From: Rhodosorus marinus CCMP1338 | Taxonomy: Eukaryota; Plantae; Rhodophyta | Direction of reading: 5' to 3' | DNA: 64,000 nucleotides | Assembly (NCBI GenBank): GCA_029953675.1 | Contig: JAMWBK010000004.1 | Coordinates: 186,001-250,000 of the forward strand | Shown here: one piece after another, positions 3,001-61,982 of the stretch | Position numbering within the stretch: the first letter of the stretch is position 1 | How the letters are laid out: each line of letters starts with the position of its first letter | The notes under the pieces: model-generated | Database searches by the model: none | The model's input: only the letters and a program-made list of their open reading frames with translations | What the model was told of the DNA's origin: nothing | Translations under genes and position numbers: made by a program

Positions 3001-4075
3001 ACTGGTTGCTGCGGTAGACTTCTCTGATCACTCATCAAACCTGCCATGAACACATTGTACGGCCGAGCTATTAGTGACCGAGGCCAACAATCGACTACAT
3101 TGAACACCATCGGCTCACACCGGACCCAAAACGCGATTCTCTCAACACCTTACCGACATTGGGGGCCTCCACACTGAGGCCCGGTCTAGGTCCCACCGGC
3201 TGATCGGCCGCGGTCCTGTGCGAATCATGCAGGGGTTGATCATCGCCAAAATCTGATTGGGCTGGCGCCACTGGCATTTTTTGCCGTATAGGCGGCTGCG
3301 GCTGCGACTGCGACTGCAATGGCACCGGGGGTCCCGATGCGCGACTCTGTTGCTGTGACGACTGCTGGTGACTGCTGCTTATTCCAGCGAAAAAGTCTTC
3401 TGCGGAGGTCTTCGGTCGCTGACTGTAGTCAGTGGCTGCGTAGGGAGCAGGCTGCCTACCAAAACCCCGGTTGTCGTAGCCCGGACCCGCGGTCTCCCCG
3501 AAGGGCGCGGTTGTCGGCCTCAAGGCCTGGTTGGAAGGGCTAACGTTTGGGTTTAAGCCATAGATCTGGCCCCCGGTATTCATCTGCCCGTACGCCTGCA
3601 CTGGCGGAGCCTGCGGCGATCTCTTGAACCCCGGATGTCCTCTTGGTTGCATTTGATCCTGCATCTGCTGCTGTTGAGCCTGTTGTGGCATTCTCGGCTG
3701 TAGAATCCTTTGCTGTCCAGGAAACGCGCCACCTGGAGCACTTTGGGGTGGGTACTGACCCTGTTGCTGGTACGGCGCGTGACCAGGCATTTGCTGTTGG
3801 TAAGCTCCAGCCTGTCCCATACCTTGGGCACCGCCTGGAGGCGCGTGCGTCTGCTGCTGCGACATCGCGTAGATCTGCTCCATGGATCTGAGCTGGTCCA
3901 CCCCAACTCGGTTTCTCTGTACATTCTGGTTGGGATCCTTATGGGATCATGAAGAGATAGACGAGTAAGCTTCAACAAATGCAAGAAACTCCGACAGCTA
4001 GACATTACGGGAACGAACCAAGCGTACCCCTTGCTGGTAGTAGTACGGCTGCTGGCCGCCTCCATAGTAGCTCAT
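1..4075 (-). CDS. SEC16: COPII scaffold protein Sec16 homologue, multi-exon, 3' end beyond the left edge
   Basis: ATG at 4075 (MSYYGGGQQPYYYQQG), then a phase-0 intron (GTACGC...ATAAG) into Q/P-rich exons. The central exons carry Sec16 motifs PIVSFGFGG (ORF 2003-2335) and GAHVCYIGA...IVLLGADH (ORF 698-1543). One minus-strand frame stays open from about 650 towards position 1. Confidence 0.85.
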
Positions 4076-11082: not shown

Positions 11083-16761
<5,679 letters not shown>

Positions 16762-19166
16762 GCGATTTCGCAACTAGCCCTTTCAGCAGCAAACACCTCC
16801 AAGAAGAGAGAGCAGCACAGGTCGAAAGTGCAGGATAAACAGAAATGTACAGACTGTGCATGGATTGTGCCCTATTAAAAGGAATTTGTTTCCGCTCGGA
16901 GTTTGGTACTGCGTGACTTCAAGCTCCCCAAATGGAAACACAGCCGAGGGGGGTCCTAAACGCGAGAACTAGTACTAAAACTACCTAAACTACTAGTAAG
17001 GTTTTTCTGACTTCCACAACATTCCGAGAGATCGACTTTAAATCTTCGCTCGGCCCTAAGCAGCTAGCGGAGGCGTCTTGTACAAGCTCTACTATACAGG
17101 ACTAGGAAGACTCATTTATACTAATCCTTCATGTAGTTCAATAAAAAACCTAGTGCAAGACTCAGTGCGGAATGGAGTCAGACTCTGAGCAGAGCTAGCT
17201 GCACCGGATCCAAGGAAGACTGCCCCATCCAAAGCGTACCCTCGTGCTCGATGATTCCAAGCATGCAGTGAACAATAGTCAACCACCATTCTACAACTAC
17301 CTCACTCAGAAGTTTTGCTTTCCTTAACAGTGGTACAAACATCACGCGTTTATTCAACAGACGAGACCCGCTCTAATTAGATGGCACACGATACATGACC
17401 GCTCGTGCTCTGGGTCATGGACCTGCTTGTCGTACAACTACTTCACAATGGAGGAAAGCAAATAGTTCTAAGCAATTCACTGAACTACATTACGAGTGGT
17501 GGGTTCTGGTCACATGAAAAGTAAAAGCTATCAATTTCACGAGTTCCCTTGAAAGTTCAATCCCCCGTCAATGAGCCCCGTACGTACAACAGAGTACATA
17601 CTATTTCGAGTGCAGGGTGTGGCCCAACAAGACTCCATGGATTACAGGACTGAATATTCATTAACGAGAATTTCAATCAAACTCGCTTGAATGAGGCCAA
17701 GCAGAAGCGCATGCCTTCCTCCGTTGCATTGAGAAGAACTACTAGAAGGAACTATCCACGAAAGATGTGACCGTGACGATGCAAGCCAATTAAACTCGCA
17801 AGTACCAATCGGTTTCACGCGCTCGTCCCGGTAAAGAAAAAACCCAATACCCTTCTAATCGATCAATGCACACCACCCAATTCCCCCCCCCCTGACACAG
17901 TCTGCGATCTCAGGTCAGGGCATGCTGCCCATTCCACACCCGCTCTACCCGTTAAGCGTTGTTTACATTGTCTCCATAATAAAGCTTGAAGAGTGAACCA
18001 AATATTATCAGATTCTGATAAAAAATCCATCTAAATGACCTTAGCTGTTTGTAGTATTTTCTCAAATAAAACAAGAACTCAATCATATTCCATCCTCAAA
18101 CTTGCAAAAAGTCCACCAATTCGGCCAATTTAATTATGTATTATAGTACATTTTAAGGTTACCAATCAACATTTATCGGAAAGTAATGTCTGGAGGATAA
18201 ATATCCATAGGAATCGGGTATTCCGGCGAGATTTTTCTGGGAGGCAAACTATAGCGTATTTCTAGGAGGATTAGTCGGACAGATTTTGTTCGGAAGGAAA
18301 CATATGAGCCTGCGAAACTGGTGGTTTCAGCCGTGACCAGGAACCCCGTCGTGTTCGCTGACCTACATCATGGTGCAAACGCCTTTGGAAAAAGAATGTG
18401 AATTATTTAGTTTCCGTTTCGGGTGGTAAGAGTACGCTCAGAAGTAGTACTAGTTATATCTAAATTCCTTCCGCTTTGCGTTACTTTGCTAGCCGACTTT
18501 CTGCTCTGTGATTCACTATGTAATTTTAACGGCTGACTGTATTTTTCTACCTACATTTAGAAAAAATTTGCAGAAACGTTCGGGGGTGCGAATAGCGGAA
18601 AGACCTATTAAGGGGTAAACAAAAGGAGCCGAAAATCCTAAAACGGTAAGCCCAATCCTTACCCCCCTGTCCACATGAACGTGAACCTCTTCAAGAATCA
18701 AATTAATAGAGGTTCTTGAACGATTGATTAGTAGCCAGGGGTGGTTTTGAATCTAAGTATCTGCCAGTTACAATGCTGTGATAGGGGTAGCGAAAAGGTC
18801 TAAAGACCATGGTTTCTACGTTTATGGGCCAGCTTTTATTTCCGTAGTTTTTGGATACTGTCGTAAAACGTTGTTGATGGAGCTTTTTGATGTCAATGCA
18901 GAGGGGGCAGGTCAACTGGCATTTGCGAGATGAAGTCGTTTGCGGGGTGACCGGTAGGGGTCGTCAGTTAGAAAAGGATATAGCAAGAGGATGGGGAGGT
19001 GGAGTGGAGAGTGGGGACAGTAGGAGAAAAATTCGTTTTGGACTGTTGGTGTGAGAGTCCGATTGAATAGAATTCAAGTCGATGTGGTTGGGGTTAGTGG
19101 TATTGAAAAGGTATTGAGGTGGGATCAGGGTTGGGTGTGGCCATTGGATTGGCGTTTATTGGAAGT

Positions 19167-22037
19167 ATGAATGGTGTGGAGAAGCTTCCTTCTCAGGAGG
19201 CGTCAGATGATGTGAAGACACTGAAGGGGGAAGTGAAGATGGAACTGATGACGAACAAGATTGAGCAGGGTATCAAGGAGTTGGACGTGAACGGACCACC
19301 TCGTCCTGGATTCCCGGCATCGACGACGATGTCAAATCAAGCGCCTCCAGCAGATGAGCTAGATGATTACAAGGTCTGTCCGCTGTCCAAGCACCATGCA
19401 CCTGAAGTGGATTGGAAGAGCATGTCCAACCGGGAGCTCGCAAACTCCAAGGATATGTACACGAAGGAGTTTTCAGAGCTCATGTTCAACCAACGCGTCC
19501 TCTTCGCTGCTTTGGACCCAAAGGTACCTCTGTTAGAGAGGTTTAAGTTCTGCTGCATCGTTTCTAGCAATATGGACGAGGTATACGCAAAGAGGCTCGG
19601 GAATATTCCGAAGTTTGATGAGGAGGATGAGGAGGATAGGAACAAGAACTACAAGAAGCTGATCCGGCCTAAGACGGGGTTCGAGGAGGAGCTGGCTTCC
19701 GCGGTCAGCGATACAGTGGATGCCCTCTACGACTGCCTTCTTACGCAGCTGCTTCCTCAGATGAAGGAGCTCGGTGTTGAAATTCTCACGCGGAAGAAGC
19801 TCAATGCGCAGCAGAGGAGGAACGTGACGGTATACTTCAAGAAGAAGATTTTACCGATCCTGACGCCGTTGTCTGTAGATCAGACCCACCCCTTTCCGTT
19901 GCTTCAAAGTCACGGAATCTACCTGGCGGTTGTGCTGTTGAACCCAGAAACGGACAAGACGCGACGGGTGTACCTTAGGGTGCCGCCGGTGAAACCGAGG
20001 GCCGTGAAGCTAGATGACGAGGGACTCAAGTACATCCCCATCGAAGAGATTGTACTGGACAATATGAACCTGGTCACGGAGGGTATGCAGGTGCTCAAGG
20101 CATATCCATTCCGCGTCACGAGGAACGTCAAGCTCGTGATTGACGATGCCCACTTTGGTGAGAGCGATAACCTGCTTGACTTTGTGTGGGAGGAAGTCCA
20201 CAGGCGGCGCAGCGCACCGGCCACGAGATTGGAAGTGACTAAGGACATGCCAGCAGAGTTCTTGGACCTCTTGGTGAAGGAGCTCATTCTGGACAGCACT
20301 GATGTGTTTGTGTTGCCGTGTAACCTGGTTGGTCTAGCGGACTTTATGTCCATTAGCTTCAGCGCACCCTTTGCGGAGCACCGCGACGCCCCGCATACAC
20401 CGAGGGTGCCGAAACGCTTCGAAGGGCTCGAGGAGAAGCTGCTCATGGAGCCCGGAAAGGTCTTCAACCAGATCCGAAAGCAGGACATCTTGGTCGAGTA
20501 CCCCAAGCACTCGTTCAAGCACAGCAGCGCATTGTTCTTGAGAGCTGCAGCTAGGGACACAAAGGTTAGGGTCATCAAGTGCTGCCTGTACCGCGGTGGA
20601 GATGATTCCCCCCTTGTGGCTTCGCTGATAAGGGCGGCCAAGTCTGGCAAGGAGGTGAGCGTTCTGGTTGAACTGAAGGCTTCGTTCGATGAAGTTCAGA
20701 ACTCCGAGTACGCACGGAAACTGAGAAGGGCTGGATGCAACGTGAGCTATGGCATGCTCGGCCTCAAGGCTCACTGCAAACTGATCCTAGTCGTGCGTGA
20801 GGAGGAGAGTGGCTTCCGGCCATACGCCAATATCGCAACAGGCAATTTCAATCCCGGAACTGCAAAGATCTACACGGACCAGTCCCTGTTCACATGTCGG
20901 GAGAACATCTGTTCGGACGTTATCGACCTGTACAACGCACTGTTCGGCTATTCACGAAAGCGGAACTACAACTCCTTGCTCGTTGCGCCGGTGAACATGT
21001 TGTCCAGTTTCATTTCGTTTATCCGCAAGGAGGCGGAGAACGCGAGGAAGGGCCAGAAGGCTCACATCATCGTCCAAGTCAATGGGCTCACTGAACCTTC
21101 CATAGTAGAAGAGCTCTACGCCGCCTCCCAAGCCGGCGTCAAGATTGATCTGATCGTGAGGGGCATCTGTTGTATCCGACCCGGGCTGCCGGGCAAGAGC
21201 GAGAACGTCAACGTCTACAGCTGGATTGGACGGTTCCTTCAGCATCAGCGGATCTATTACTTCTACGATGGTGGAAAGGAGCACATGTACATTGGATCCG
21301 CGGACTGGAGAAGCCGTAACCTGAAGAACCGTGTGGAAGTGTGTACGCCAGTCGAGGATTCAAAGCTCTTCAAGAAGCTCTACTCCAACCTGCAGTTCTT
21401 CCTCAAGGACACACGGAACACCTGGCGCATGGCATCCGATGGACGCTATTACATGCGGAAACCGGAGGCGTCTGTCAAGTCCATTGCCATCGAAAAGTCG
21501 AGCGAACTGGAGGATGAGTATGCCACGAGCGCGATTGTGATGGATGCGGAAGGAGATGGCTCCGATGACGAGGATGTTACGAGATACAGGGTCATGATCA
21601 ATGGTGCTCAGGTGGCGGTCACTTCGGCGCTGCACATGTGTATTCCGGTCCGGGCAATTGATGATAAGAACCTGAGCGTGCTTTTGGTTCAGAGCGGAAA
21701 GAGCACAGACGAGGAGAAGATGGTTTGGAGCTTTCCGCAGGTGAATGACGAGAGTGGAAACTCGCTCCTGGATGCTGTCCAGGGAGAATGCGAGAAGGAA
21801 GCTGGGGTCACGGGCGGAGTAGTGGACTACATTCCGTGGAAGAAGATTGGGACAGACACTGCCGCAGATTTCCACATCTTCCAGGTCGAGGCCGAAGAAG
21901 AGTGGGCAGGAGAGCTAACCCGCGGACGCCTTTGGATGACTTTGCCCGACGCTATCAACCAAGCCAATGAGATGAAGGATGAGCGGCAGGAGAAGACGCT
22001 TGAGGCGGTCCAGAAGTGGTTCGCCGACCTCCACTGA
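19167..22037 (+). CDS. PPK1: Polyphosphate kinase 1 (bacterial type) with C-terminal Nudix-like domain, intronless
   Basis: FNQRV..PLLERFKF..SSNMDE, LTPLSVDQTHPFP, FRVTRN, DILVEYPKHSF, GLKAHCKL, TGNFNPGTAKIYTD, IDLIVRGIC, RFLQH and GSADWRSRNL..RVEV. The first in-frame ATG is 19167 (the ORF track starts at GTG 19119). Confidence 0.95.
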   Translation: MNGVEKLPSQEASDDVKTLKGEVKMELMTNKIEQGIKELDVNGPPRPGFPASTTMSNQAPPADELDDYKVCPLSKHHAPEVDWKSMSNRELANSKDMYTKEFSELMFNQRVLFAALDPKVPLLERFKFCCIVSSNMDEVYAKRLGNIPKFDEEDEEDRNKNYKKLIRPKTGFEEELASAVSDTVDALYDCLLTQLLPQMKELGVEILTRKKLNAQQRRNVTVYFKKKILPILTPLSVDQTHPFPLLQSHGIYLAVVLLNPETDKTRRVYLRVPPVKPRAVKLDDEGLKYIPIEEIVLDNMNLVTEGMQVLKAYPFRVTRNVKLVIDDAHFGESDNLLDFVWEEVHRRRSAPATRLEVTKDMPAEFLDLLVKELILDSTDVFVLPCNLVGLADFMSISFSAPFAEHRDAPHTPRVPKRFEGLEEKLLMEPGKVFNQIRKQDILVEYPKHSFKHSSALFLRAAARDTKVRVIKCCLYRGGDDSPLVASLIRAAKSGKEVSVLVELKASFDEVQNSEYARKLRRAGCNVSYGMLGLKAHCKLILVVREEESGFRPYANIATGNFNPGTAKIYTDQSLFTCRENICSDVIDLYNALFGYSRKRNYNSLLVAPVNMLSSFISFIRKEAENARKGQKAHIIVQVNGLTEPSIVEELYAASQAGVKIDLIVRGICCIRPGLPGKSENVNVYSWIGRFLQHQRIYYFYDGGKEHMYIGSADWRSRNLKNRVEVCTPVEDSKLFKKLYSNLQFFLKDTRNTWRMASDGRYYMRKPEASVKSIAIEKSSELEDEYATSAIVMDAEGDGSDDEDVTRYRVMINGAQVAVTSALHMCIPVRAIDDKNLSVLLVQSGKSTDEEKMVWSFPQVNDESGNSLLDAVQGECEKEAGVTGGVVDYIPWKKIGTDTAADFHIFQVEAEEEWAGELTRGRLWMTLPDAINQANEMKDERQEKTLEAVQKWFADLH

Positions 22038-22352: not shown

Positions 22353-23300
22353 TTAGAGGAAATCGTTGGCTCTGAGGATCCGGAAAATGTCCACGTTGGT
22401 CTCCAGAAGGCAAGCGTGTCCGCAGCTCGGAAGCTCTTGTACAGATGAGTCAGGGATGAGATCTGCTAAACGACTGGCTTCTCTTGTTGAGTCGAAGATC
22501 ATATCTTTGCCGCTCGCGACGATGAGGGTAGGCATCGTGATCTTGTTCGTTATTTCCTGGGTCAACATCGAAAACAGTCTAATGAGTTCTCTGCCTCCAT
22601 GAGCACTGTGAACCTGGAACCTCACTCTATCTCGAAAAGGCGGCCTTCGAATGAGCCGCAGGCGATGTTCTGCGGCTTCCAAGGGGGCTGAAGAGACGTT
22701 GACGGACGGGAGCTGCATGACGGGTCCAGGAGTTATGTTCTCAGGATCGACCCGGTCCGGGCTTGTTAGGAATCGCCACAGAACTGTGGCCGCTAGAGGG
22801 TAAAGAAGCTTTCCTGAAGAGTCAATTCTCAAGACTGGGAGAAGTGCTGCCCCAGCTCCGACGAGAGAAGATGATCGAAATGCGGTGGCGGAATTTACGA
22901 GCACAAGACGATCCACCAAAAGCGGTTCCACAACCAACGCGGACAAGGCAAACACCGCGCCGAGAGATTCCGCGATGACAATCACCTGCGAAGGCTGGAG
23001 CTCATTCTTGAGGTTCCTCAGAGCGGCTCTAGCAGCAGATCTAAGAGTCGGCCAGCCTGACTTATCCCGTGGCCCGTGATAAATCGACGCAATGCTGACG
23101 CCCTCCCCAGCGCATCTAACCTGGTTCACAGGAAGCGCTCGGGCATCCATGCCGGCAAAAAAGACCACCAATGGACACCTGGAAGGCGCTTCAACCCGTT
23201 CGACTCTCACCACCAAAGCCCGGTAGTCCGGCAAGCCCATCCTCCTCACCACAGAACGATGGCGTGGAGCCTGCCAGTTCACAACAAATCCAAACTCCAT
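22353..23300 (-). CDS. Plastid-targeted alpha/beta hydrolase, related to the hydrolase domain of phytyl ester synthase/ELT proteins
   Basis: MEFGFVV transit-peptide-like start, nucleophile elbow AESLG, LVLVNSAT, PTLIVASGKD, LPSCGHACLLE. One probable in-frame intron near 22540-22625. Confidence 0.8.
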   Translation of the reverse strand: MEFGFVVNWQAPRHRSVVRRMGLPDYRALVVRVERVEAPSRCPLVVFFAGMDARALPVNQVRCAGEGVSIASIYHGPRDKSGWPTLRSAARAALRNLKNELQPSQVIVIAESLGAVFALSALVVEPLLVDRLVLVNSATAFRSSSLVGAGAALLPVLRIDSSGKLLYPLAATVLWRFLTSPDRVDPENITPGPVMQLPSVNVSSAPLEAAEHRLRLIRRPPFRDRVRFQVHSAHGGRELIRLFSMLTQEITNKITMPTLIVASGKDMIFDSTREASRLADLIPDSSVQELPSCGHACLLETNVDIFRILRANDFL

Positions 23301-24373
23301 CTCGGACCACGGTGGCACGATGTTCAATCGATGTTTTGATCAGTCATTACAGTTCCATTTCAGAAGATCAAACCTCCGCGTCTACTTCAAAGCTGCCATA
23401 CTTCCGATACCTCCTCCAGAGAGCTCTCCTGACCCTGAACTTGTCAGTTATCCACCCGCCATCTCCATTCAGTCAAAATATTAAAACCTAGATTGTTTTC
23501 AGTCAAAATTTGAATTAACGGAAAACGGATTTTTTAGGTTTGCCTGGATTAGTGAGTATTTTGTACATACTCTCATGAAGCTGATGATTATGTAAGGCCA
23601 GTGCTTGGCGCTATGGAAGTCCACATACCTCTAAGGCGATGAACAAATCTATCTAGGTGCTTGTTAGAGGCGTGTTGAGGTCAGATAGTAACCTCACAGA
23701 GTCTTTTGAAAGATAAAAAAAGTGTTCCAAAAGATTATACGCCCGGTCGCGAGGAAGAACGGAGAAGGGTCGCGTGTGTACGACCCGTTTCTGGATGCAT
23801 CCAGGTTCCGGAAGTTGAACACGAATTGGCTATGAACGCTCCAATCCGTTTCTATAAATCTTCTGAAGTGCTCACCACTGGATAAGCCGAGTCGCGTCGC
23901 AATCCATTTCCACCCCTGGACCTTTGCTCTGCGAAACCTACGCTTGCATGGTACAACGAGAGCAGCCTCTACTCCTCGCTGACCAGGCCGCTCGTCATCT
24001 AACCCCCCAGTGAAGGGCTAGAAACCTGAGCGGTGTCTCAGCGACGGAAACGAAGCTAAGCCTCAGAAACTCAGACAGTCCTGAAAAACTCGTCAGACCG
24101 AAATTAATGTTCCTCGTTCATTATGCCCTGGTTTCTCATAGTGACAAACCTTGGGCATTCAATCGGTTATTCGGCTTCGTCAACTTGGAGAAGCAACAAC
24201 GGTCCAGCGCTTCCCTGTTCTCAATACGTGCCATGCCTCATATTGACGCTTCCAAGTAATTTAATAAAGGACGCAGCACAGCCCGGTGCTTGGAACGCTT
24301 CCGTAAGAAGTTGAACGTGCTCTCGACTAAACTGAGCGCTGCTAGGCCGAGGATCTTAACAGGTATCAAAGAA

Positions 24374-59617: not shown

Positions 59618-61982
59618 ATGAGCGCTGAGGCGTCCCATTCCCGAAATGGGTGGGAGGGGACGCTGACGAAGGAACAGGAAGCCGTTGTCTATGCGGATGC
59701 TGGTGAGGCTCTGAGCGTCATCGCAGGAGCAGGATCGGGCAAAACGCGAGTGATCGCGGCACGGGCAAGCAGGCTGATTGATCAGGGCATCTATCCTGTC
59801 CTGTTACTTTCGTTCTCACGGGCGGCAGCTGAAGAACTTCGTCATCGACTTGGAAAGTCTGTAAACCAACGAAAGGCGTTGCCCAGACAGAGCAAGTTCG
59901 AGGTGTCAACGTTTCACGCGCTCGGACTCAGGATACTGCGCTCTTGTAGCACAGAAGTACTTTTGCAGAGGACTGGAAGGTCAAAAGGCTTTTCAATCTT
60001 TTCGTTCACCGAACAGAGGAACATTGCGCAGGAGGTCTTGAGAGAGCTCGGCAAAGAAGGATCTCCAGCGTCGATCTTGAAATCCATTCTGAGCTCCCGG
60101 CTTCACCCTCAAAGCAAGCCGAGTGCAGAAGTACAAGCCGCGAGTGACCTGTACGAGAAGAAGCTGATTGAGAGTAACGCTTTCGACATCGAACAACTGG
60201 TTTTAGCAGCCGAGCTGATCCTCGAACGCGAGACCAGCGTTCGGAAGCAATGGCAGAACCAGTTCAAGGGAGTCCTCGTCGATGAGTTTCAGGACGTTTC
60301 ACAGCACAACTTCAACCTACTTGTACAGCTCTGTGGAGCGACAACGAGCGTGACGGTTGTGGGGGATGATGACCAATCTATTTATTCTTTTCGCGGATCC
60401 ATTCCGGAGGTTTTCAAGCTGTTTGAGGCAAAGTTTCATGGAGCAAAGAACCAGCTCCAGCTTGTGGAGAACTTCAGAAGCCAGCAGCATCTCGTTGAGG
60501 CGGCTTCAGTCGTAATTTCTGATGCTCCGAATCGTCTACCGAAGAGGCTCAAAACGTCGAATCCTCCCGGCGCGAAGGTGAAGATCGTGAGTTGCATCAA
60601 CGCAGGTAAAAAGCAACTCAATGAAGAAGTACATCCGTGCACCGCTATCCCTCCTCACAGACTTTTTTCACTTTTTGCGGATCTCTAGACCATGAGGGGC
60701 AGTACCTAGCACAGCAGATCAAGCATTTGCACACCGATATGTCCATTCCATACTCTCAGATCGCTGTTCTAAGCCGTACCAGAGCGAGATCTCTGGAGAT
60801 CAGGTCGAGACTCGAGGACATAGGTGGGACGCATTAGCTATGACGATACCACCTTAACGGTTTGTCTGACACAAGAGTTTTGTTTTTTTTTCACCTCCAC
60901 CCCTAACTTGTCCAGCAATTCCTACGACCATGATGCCAAGAAAAGGTCGCGGGATGTCGTTCTGGTCTGTATTCCAGGACCCCGGCTCTTCCGAGTCCAG
61001 CCGAGTGCCAACAGCATCGTCAGCGGCGTTGGCTATGGTTCGTTTGGTTTGCAACGAGTCCGATAAGAGCTCGTTTGCGCTTCTGGCCAAATTGTTTGAG
61101 GTTCCCGACGATGTGGTGCAAACTCTAATGGGAGAGGCCCGCTGCACCTTATCCGCGGCGATCCGGATGAAGAATACTGCCTCCAAGGAAAATCGAAAGC
61201 AGCTGTTTCAATTTCTCGTCGTGGTGGATAAGCTGAAGCAGTACTTGACGAGGACGGCTGGCAGCGCTTCGTTGAGGCAATTCATTTATCAGGCTCTATC
61301 GCTACTTCCACTGGATGACAAGTACTCTGGATCGGTTGAGAAGGTTCTTGCAGCGGCTCAAGAAGCCGACTCGATTGGCGGCGAGGACTCGGGTTCGGTA
61401 ACCTTCGGAGCGGAGAAAGCGGGTTCTTACGATGCAGAGGATGATATGGCACTTCTCTTGAAGGGATCCAAGAAGCCCTCAAATCATCGAGCCGCTCCAA
61501 TTTCCAATGGCAACGATCCTCGGTGGAGCGGAGTGGATCGTCTGCGCCGAACGCTCGACATCTTCGTTCAATTGGAAGCCGACAACGACATAAGCGCGGC
61601 CTCTGTTCCCAAGGAGAGTGTATTGTGCACCACGATTCATCAGTCGAAAGGCCTGGAGTGGCGCGTCGTTCTGCTCCCGGGGATGAACGACGGCACCCTC
61701 CCGCTTAGGAACCACTACTCCGAGTCGCGGGAGAACATCGACGAAGAGCGTAGGCTATGTTACGTCGCCTTCACCAGGGCGAGGGAGAAGCTGCTCATCT
61801 CGTACATCGTCCAAGACATGAACATGTCCCAGTTCCAGAGCTGTTTCCTTCAAAAGCTCCCACAAAGTTGTACCGAGAGAGAAGCCCTTGGCGAAATGAA
61901 ACCTTTGGATCATCCACCCTCAATTGGGCCGTCCAAACCCCCCCGGAAGCGGCCAAAAAAGAAACCAAAGGCCGAGGGTTAG
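59618..61982 (+). CDS. SRS2: UvrD/Rep/SRS2-like 3'-5' DNA helicase, probably three exons
   Basis: LTKEQ, AGAGSGKT, TFHALG, LVDEFQD, GDDDQSIYSFRG, ENFRS, VLSRT, TIHQSKGLEW, EERRLCYVAFTRA. Introns at about 60606-60688 and about 60826-60915. Confidence 0.9.

Follow-up and report, generated by a model that had tools for sequence, protein, structure and literature searches.

The window analysed here, by which we mean the whole 64-kb stretch of contig JAMWBK010000004.1 (assembly GCA_029953675.1), comes from Rhodosorus marinus, a stylonematophycean red alga (Stylonematophyceae); the data-availability statement of PMC10250338 assigns the assembly to this species. Its subject is a forward-strand gene at 19167..22037 that encodes a polyphosphate kinase 1 (PPK1) joined to a C-terminal domain of the Nudix type. 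An uninterrupted open reading frame (ORF) extends from 19119 to 22037 on the plus strand, with its first ATG at 19167 and a TGA stop at 22035-22037. The ORF list and the stop codon as read give a complete, intron-free coding sequence of 956 amino acids (aa) plus the stop, and the public annotation of the assembly holds the same 956-aa single-exon gene model. We regard it as reasonably probable that the product is a polyphosphate (polyP) synthase which has retained a pseudo-Nudix tail, and that this tail is neither a hydrolase of polyP or inositol pyrophosphates (PP-InsPs) nor a classical sensor of polyanions.

The protein begins with an N-terminal extension (aa 1-98; 19167..19460, +), its fastest-evolving segment, whose residues 1-55 are predicted to be disordered. 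The PPK1 core (aa 99-768; 19461..21470, +) comprises the N, middle (head), C1 and C2 domains with the LKAHCKL motif, and was delimited by Pfam, TIGR03705, alignment and substitution rates. It is followed by a linker (aa 769-805; 21471..21581, +) with the sequence SVKSIAIEKSSELEDEYATSAIVMDAEGDGSDDEDVT, which is acidic in the translation, modelled with low confidence and poorly conserved, both its length and its sequence varying among orthologs. The C-terminal module (aa 806-956; 21582..22034, +), which emerged from AlphaFold2, Foldseek, a profile search of the Protein Data Bank (PDB), Pfam and substitution rates, opens with a beta-hairpin extension, continues with a Nudix fold of the DIPP type and ends in a C-terminal helix. 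The hairpin, RYRVMINGAQVAVTS, occupies aa 806-820 (21582-21626, +) and is modelled with a predicted local distance difference test score (pLDDT) above 90. The degenerate Nudix box, VNDESGNSLLDAVQGECEKEAGV, was placed at aa 859-881 (21741..21809, +) by translation and by column mapping to human DIPP1. In the full-length AlphaFold2 model the pLDDT is below 50 for residues 1-55 and 60-69 for the linker, which is consistent with a flexibly tethered Nudix module. An earlier note, made from the letters of the DNA alone, had described an in-frame, intron-less fusion through an acidic linker at 19167-22037, and the ORF and its translation agree with it on both the coordinates and the linker.

The PPK1 core matched all four Pfam families of the enzyme (PF13089, PF02503, PF17941 and PF13090) above their gathering scores, with E values from 1e-19 to 3e-62, and it scored 656.6 bits against the NCBIfam PPK1 equivalog TIGR03705, for which the cut-off is 465.85. 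The motif that carries the phospho-histidine is present: the window sequence GLKAHCKLILV aligns with glkiHAKlfli and glkvHAKtali of the solved PPK1 structures 2o8r and 1xdo, and the histidine itself (H536) is invariant in the alignment A2. We take the autophosphorylated histidine of the L-K-x-H-x-K motif in C1 to be H435 of the Escherichia coli enzyme. The second conserved histidine of bacterial PPK1, in the motif YxHxGTGN[FY]N and presumably H454 in E. coli, is replaced in the window, which reads YANIATGNFN at about 20820-20850. Here the red-algal PPK1s examined have N, Q or S without exception, and the bacterial relatives examined H. Since it is L in the solved Porphyromonas gingivalis PPK1 (2o8r), the second histidine is no universal requirement of PPK1. 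Genes for the VTC-type polymerase (VTC4) are reported to be absent from red algae in a review (PMC12526157); this absence and the family membership of the core make it a probable polyP synthase.

The identity of the tail was examined with sequence profiles and predicted structures. The Pfam family NUDIX (PF00293) was recognized at aa 832-939, narrowly above its gathering cut-off of 21.1: the score was 22.2 bits with the full protein and 26.0 bits with the tail alone. A profile built from 14 red-algal tails (A1) was searched against PDB sequences, and its 15 best matches were all human DIPP3-alpha, DIPP2 or DIPP1 (E 8e-22 to 9e-20); an oomycete Nudix effector, an Ap4A hydrolase and yeast Ddp1 (E 2e-14) ranked below them. 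AlphaFold2 modelled the 151-aa tail with a pLDDT of 87.9 and a predicted template modelling score (pTM) of 0.81, and the fold was also confident within the full-length model. Foldseek searches with the tail model returned 270 PDB matches at E<=0.001, of which the best 50 were all Nudix proteins; DIPP1/2/3 and Ddp1 were among the Nudix structures found, with a probability of 1.0 and target-normalised template modelling (TM) scores of up to 0.76. In a library of 1.84 billion proteins, the closest stand-alone relatives of the tail were small eukaryotic Nudix proteins, such as a Thecamonas protein named 'nudix hydrolase 21' and a Physarum protein. Among the 30 word-indexed matches returned for the Nudix profile were a plant protein annotated as NUDT13-like and, as the sole PPK1-tail sequence, a 192-aa fragment (P0121). 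Together, profile, model and structural matches, three independent lines that are stronger than the marginal Pfam score, establish the tail as a DIPP-derived Nudix fold. The earlier note had placed a DIPP/Ddp1-type Nudix domain after PPK1 and named structure prediction as a check on it, and it was right on both the family and the fold; the gapless alignment to the DIPP1 box (30 residues) and the downstream W...R.R.W...DA match that it had seen were both recovered with MAFFT.

The best homologs of the full protein were red-algal PPK1s of 930-1300 aa, most of them with a precomputed PF00293 domain. Their sources include a relative with 94% identity (P0001), an MMETSP transcript of a relative with 70% identity (P0002), Porphyridium purpureum, Gracilaria, Agarophyton, Galdieria, Cyanidium and Cyanidiococcus. 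Ranked after these red-algal proteins were bacterial PPK1s of 700-850 aa, none of which carried a Nudix domain. The survey of architectures for which the earlier note had called thus found the fusion in more than 25 red-algal proteins, from genomes as well as transcriptomes, and only Nudix-free PPK1s among the bacterial proteins listed. The complete ORF of the MMETSP transcript covers both the PPK1 and the Nudix parts, indicating that the fusion is transcribed as a single unit in a relative. These comparisons show, by sequence, that the gene is the R. marinus ortholog of the red-algal PPK1-Nudix fusion of the CmPPK1 type. The suggestion that the fusion was undescribed did not hold: a 2024 paper on CmPPK1 of Cyanidioschyzon merolae already presents a PPK1-Nudix hydrolase fusion (Yagisawa et al., Plant Mol Biol 115:9, 2024, doi 10.1007/s11103-024-01539-5), and the review PMC12526157 states that most eukaryotic PPK homologs are fused to DIPP-family Nudix hydrolases.

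Members of the Bangiales (P0005 and P0152-P0155, from Pyropia yezoensis, P. vietnamensis and Porphyra umbilicalis) have a PPK1 whose tail contains no Nudix domain and is instead an acidic, low-complexity stretch of 117-160 aa. Among these Nudix-less sequences is the 913-aa P. yezoensis PPK1, which Whitehead et al. describe as derived from mRNA. The Nudix module therefore appears to have been lost in Bangiales, and the domain is dispensable in at least one lineage.

With regard to the origin of the fusion, the adjacency of mycobacterial ppk1 and mutT1, which the earlier note had raised, is presumably a gene neighbourhood that involves a different type of Nudix protein. MutT1 has been argued to be unable to bind inositides or long polyP in the paper on yeast Ddp1 (PMC8064635). 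Three PPK1 loci from among the closest bacterial ones were inspected, two of them annotated as Chloroflexota or Caldilineaceae; none has a Nudix neighbour, and descent from a bacterial ppk1-nudix operon was rejected on these grounds. Given the lack of a Nudix gene at these bacterial loci and the eukaryotic nature of the nearest free-standing relatives of the tail, the most likely place of origin of the fusion is the red-algal stem, where a horizontally acquired PPK1 would have been joined to a DIPP gene of the host. This placement agrees with the account of a published analysis in PMC12526157. As a separate observation, the closest bacterial PPK1s (P0018, P0020, P0025, P0030 and P0049, with P0030 and P0049 annotated as Chloroflexota or Caldilineaceae) have in common with the red-algal proteins the pattern Y.PEVD...LS..EL..S..V ahead of the PPK_N domain (window aa ~85-110). 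A cyanobacterial donor of red-algal PPK1 was proposed in an earlier paper, and the donor may deserve a proper phylogeny.

The most useful result of this analysis is the division of the red-algal tails into those with a canonical Nudix box, in Cyanidiophyceae, and those with a degenerate one, elsewhere. The tails of 29 red-algal orthologs, delimited with a hidden Markov model, were aligned to human DIPP1, and the seven signature residues of GX5EX7REUXEEXGU were scored. All 6 cyanidiophytes (two Galdieria, Cyanidium, Cyanidiococcus and two relatives from hot-spring metagenomes) read RETLEEAGV or REALEEAGV and scored 7/7. Among the non-cyanidiophyte orthologs, 23 of 23 retained at most five of the seven residues, and none of the 23 had all three catalytic glutamates together. 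The window box, V-x5-N-x7-G-E-C-x-K-E-x-G-V, scored 3/7: the first and third catalytic glutamates and a glycine remain, while the leading glycine is V, the Gx5E glutamate is N and the R-E-E triad is G-E-K. Its GECEKE core is shared with the 94% relative P0001, also 3/7, and this identity rules out a sequencing error. The 70% relative P0002 reads RQVEED (4/7), P0188 reads RVAEEE and Porphyridium purpureum reads RCAAQR (3/7). Florideophytes mostly scored 5/7 (range 3-5) with a strikingly conserved R[IV]A[RK]EK, apart from P0184 and P0205, which have D and QS, respectively, at these positions. Since different lineages have retained different subsets of the glutamates, their common ancestor probably had all three and the losses occurred in parallel. 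The degeneracy had been recorded in the earlier note as GGG to QVN, R to G and the first glutamate of EE to K; these changes are correct, although the replacement of the Gx5E glutamate by N was missed. The two metal-ligand glutamates that it listed as kept, equivalent to E66 and E70 of DIPP1, are indeed present in the alignment.

The florideophyte tails (P0006-P0017, P0121, P0182-P0184, P0187 and P0205, for example from Gracilaria, Agarophyton and Hildenbrandia) have the first catalytic glutamate changed to I or V and the third to K; they keep the equivalent of K18 and have isoelectric points (pI) of 9.2-9.6. The conservation of the degenerate motif itself suggests a new, constrained function in these algae.

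We considered the possibility that the fusion is an artefact of read-through between two adjacent genes, of faulty assembly or of a frameshift error, or else that what is left of the domain is decaying and without function. The Pfam NUDIX score barely above threshold, the degenerate box and the absence of the domain from Bangiales could all be taken in this sense. The ratio of nonsynonymous to synonymous substitution rates (dN/dS) against the 94% relative (L002), however, was 0.124 for the Nudix part (aa 806-956), compared with 0.048 for the PPK1 core and 0.37 for the N-terminal extension. A value of 0.12 is far below neutrality, and it indicates, as far as sequence comparison goes, that the Nudix domain is under purifying selection and not decaying. 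Moreover, the ORF is continuous without a stop, the same architecture recurs in more than 25 red-algal proteins including the complete MMETSP transcript ORF, the box is identical in the 94% relative and the fold is predicted with confidence. The continuity of the ORF, the number of fusions, the selection and the fold effectively refute this possibility, and we give it almost no credence.

To judge whether the tail could be catalytic, its residues were compared with those of characterized enzymes. In yeast Ddp1, E80 and E84 hold Mg ions, whereas E83 forms a triad with R79 and E80; mutants of E80 and E83 are inactive or very weakly active, and the activity of R32A, which corresponds to K18 of human DIPP1, is very reduced (PMC8064635). 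In the MAFFT alignment the window reads G-E-x-x-K-E at the positions of Ddp1 R79-E80-x-x-E83-E84 and S at that of R32/K18. With K in place of E83 and S in place of R32, it thus carries two changes, each of which is crippling in Ddp1. In addition, the NUDT9 box mutants RILGEE and REFGKK were found to be inactive in a paper on NUDT9 and TRPM2. These comparisons make it fairly likely that the Rhodosorus tail is catalytically dead, or nearly so.

Several observations weigh against this reading. The direct Mg ligands, E66 and E70 of DIPP1 (E80 and E84 of Ddp1), are retained in the window, as are the equivalents of R115, R117, K41 and K133. The box AEFGEE of Nematostella TRPM2 is active, so that the loss of the box arginine is tolerated there (NUDT9/TRPM2 paper) and cannot by itself be decisive. 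Because the two Mg-ligand glutamates survive, the domain may retain some hydrolase activity, residual or altered in kind, towards, for instance, a less anionic substrate. Finally, the dN/dS of 0.124 comes from one close pair, and the comparison with the 70% relative gave about 0.2 for the Nudix part with synonymous sites saturated.

These points bear on an alternative in which the Nudix domain, in spite of its non-canonical box, would still work as a DIPP-like hydrolase, trimming polyP or degrading PP-InsPs or diadenosine polyphosphates (ApnA) beside the synthase, as the cyanidiophyte enzyme presumably does. It is supported by the equivalents of E66, E70, G72, R115 and R117 that have been kept, by the activity of the Nematostella AEFGEE box without its arginine and by the purifying selection on the domain. 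Opposed to it are the K at the E83 position, the G at the R79 position and the S at the R32 position, given that the E83 and R32A mutants of Ddp1 are impaired. The boxes of close relatives are also mutually incompatible (RQVEED in P0002, RVAEEE in P0188), which indicates that the catalytic positions drift freely within the clade. The residues of the polyanion clamp have been lost besides, and the domain is acidic. We therefore consider an active hydrolase unlikely in Rhodosorus. Product trimming, as the earlier note had proposed, fits the window poorly, with two of the three triad residues replaced and S at K18/R32, although it is plausible in Cyanidiophyceae.

The phosphate clamp was assessed at K18, R20, R41, R89, H91, R115 and K133 of DIPP1, a list drawn from PMC8064635 and from what is known of DIPP1 structures. 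At these positions the window has S, L, K, T, A, R and K, leaving three of the seven basic. Its Nudix domain has a net charge of -11 and a pI of 4.65, and tails of the Porphyridium type are likewise acidic, whereas those of florideophytes and cyanidiophytes are basic (pI 8.8-9.6). With most of the clamp gone and the domain acidic, polyP or a PP-InsP is unlikely to be bound, specifically by the Rhodosorus domain. Another alternative is that the domain is a non-catalytic sensor of PP-InsPs, polyP or nucleotides that would act allosterically on PPK1 and so provide an input of phosphate status independent of SPX. TRPM2 offers a precedent, in that its box is vestigial in later lineages while the ligand is still bound, and the domain examined here has been conserved although catalysis was probably lost; the conserved R[IV]A[RK]EK, the K18 equivalent and the pI of 9.2-9.6 in florideophytes would suit binding without cleavage. 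In the window, however, four of the positions that contact phosphate in DIPP1 hold residues that are not basic (S, L, T and A), the net charge of -11 disfavours highly anionic ligands, and the Bangiales have dispensed with the domain. A sensor of this kind seems to us a poorer prospect even than a surviving hydrolase. The sensing of PP-InsPs envisaged in the earlier note accordingly suits the window badly, with its clamp of S, L, T and A; a binding-only version is plausible for the basic florideophyte form.

We thus return to a PPK1 with a pseudo-Nudix tail. A domain that is folded and under purifying selection despite the decay of its box points to a module kept for a non-hydrolytic role. In the mechanism we propose, a PPK1 core of the bacterial type would make polyP from ATP via a phospho-histidine intermediate, and a flexible acidic linker would tether to it a C-terminal domain that descends from a eukaryotic Nudix hydrolase of the DIPP/Ddp1 type. 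Where the catalytic box is canonical, in Cyanidiophyceae, the Nudix domain can be presumed to hydrolyse. Among the non-cyanidiophyte red algae examined, Rhodosorus included, the box has decayed without exception, and in Rhodosorus most of the basic residues that clamp phosphate are gone as well; here the domain may have been retained for a role such as control of the PPK1 to which it is attached, whether structural or regulatory, or contact with another protein.

A more specific version is possible, and we offer it tentatively. After the split from Cyanidiophyceae, the DIPP domain may have turned into a regulatory pseudo-Nudix with a basic florideophyte form and an acidic form in Rhodosorus and Porphyridium, the acidic one gating PPK1. 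The basic form could bind polyP or PP-InsPs without cleaving them. The acidic form, together with the acidic linker, could serve as an intramolecular mimic of polyP or as a docking surface through which PPK1 is gated. If this were true, it would represent control of polyP synthesis in a eukaryote independent of SPX and a second case, after TRPM2, of an enzyme turned regulator.

The presence of the fusion in R. marinus is not new in itself, the fusion being already in the literature. Red algae reportedly lack the VTC polymerase and so probably depend mainly on their horizontally acquired PPK1 for polyP. In C. merolae, polyP is reportedly lost in the knockout and raised upon mutation of the Nudix domain, which is not used as evidence here. 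Since the intact box is found only in the extremophilic Cyanidiophyceae, it is possible that findings in C. merolae do not apply to mesophilic red algae, seaweeds such as Gracilaria and Pyropia among them. The red-algal series, in which the domain is intact, degenerate but maintained, or lost, offers a natural setting in which to ask what function a Nudix domain without catalysis has once it is attached to a polymerase.

Among the other large ORFs of the window, no gene for the metabolism of polyP or PP-InsPs was found, and those present are ordinary housekeeping genes. Directly downstream of the PPK1 gene and convergent with it lies an alpha/beta-hydrolase gene (22353-23327, -). The same convergent arrangement occurs in the 94% relative, where the alpha/beta-hydrolase gene is at 3195-3875 (-) of L002 and both genes are on one 4.3-kb contig. 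Upstream, two apparent introns divide an SNF2/chromodomain helicase gene (11496-16761, +) into three ORFs, in contrast to the intronless PPK1-Nudix gene of 2.9 kb. A helicase of the UvrD/REP type (59618-61982, +) is spread over two ORFs, with its N-terminal domain at 59618-60688 and its C-terminal domains at 60930-61982, and the pair is probably one intron-containing gene. Outside the window, three proteins of ~430-540 aa (P0185, P0189 and P0226) were among the best matches to the tail profile from organisms other than red algae. They belong to a recurrent family that combines a TIR domain of the CAP12/Pycsar type with two tandem Nudix domains, an architecture that suggests a candidate defence system with no relation to polyP.

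The PPK1 core resembles the bacterial enzymes (E. coli 1xdo/1xdp and P. gingivalis 2o8r), having the same four domains and phospho-histidine motif and 40-45% identity to bacterial PPK1s, which differ in having no Nudix tail. The C-terminal domain of the window protein has the same fold as the DIPP/Ddp1/Aps1 proteins (human NUDT3/4/10/11 and yeast Ddp1), together with their W..P..G loop, their R.R.W motif (R115/R117) and an alpha-1 helix that ends in AGV.G. Those enzymes stand alone, their catalytic box is complete and their basic phosphate clamp binds PP-InsPs, polyP and ApnA, whereas the window domain is fused and acidic and has lost four of the seven box residues and four clamp residues. The whole protein follows the order of the CmPPK1 type: an N-terminal extension leads into the four PPK1 domains, which a linker connects to a Nudix domain of the DIPP type at the C-terminus. 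It is 37-39% identical to cyanidiophyte orthologs, including Cyanidiococcus P0050, over ~90% of its length. The cyanidiophyte orthologs differ from it in their box (REALEEAGV or RETLEEAGV, 7/7, as against GECEKEAGV, 3/7) and in their basic domain (pI 8.8-9.6 as against 4.65), and they lack the beta-hairpin that precedes the Nudix fold in the window. A hairpin of the pattern RY.V.I.G....V.. is present in all non-cyanidiophyte orthologs, absent from human DIPP1 and not conserved in Cyanidiophyceae.

The closest parallel in evolutionary terms is the NUDT9-H domain of TRPM2, a Nudix domain that is likewise fused at the C-terminus. In early-branching lineages (invertebrates) its box is canonical and active; in vertebrates it is vestigial (RILRQE in human) yet retained, and the domain is inactive yet still binds ADP-ribose (ADPR). 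The R-I-A-R-E-K box of florideophytes has the same change from E to I after the arginine as the inactivating RIL of vertebrate TRPM2. NUDT9-H differs from the red-algal domain in that it belongs to the ADP-ribose pyrophosphatase subfamily, is attached to an ion channel and has a known ligand, ADPR. The resemblance is an analogy of evolutionary pattern and not a functional homology.

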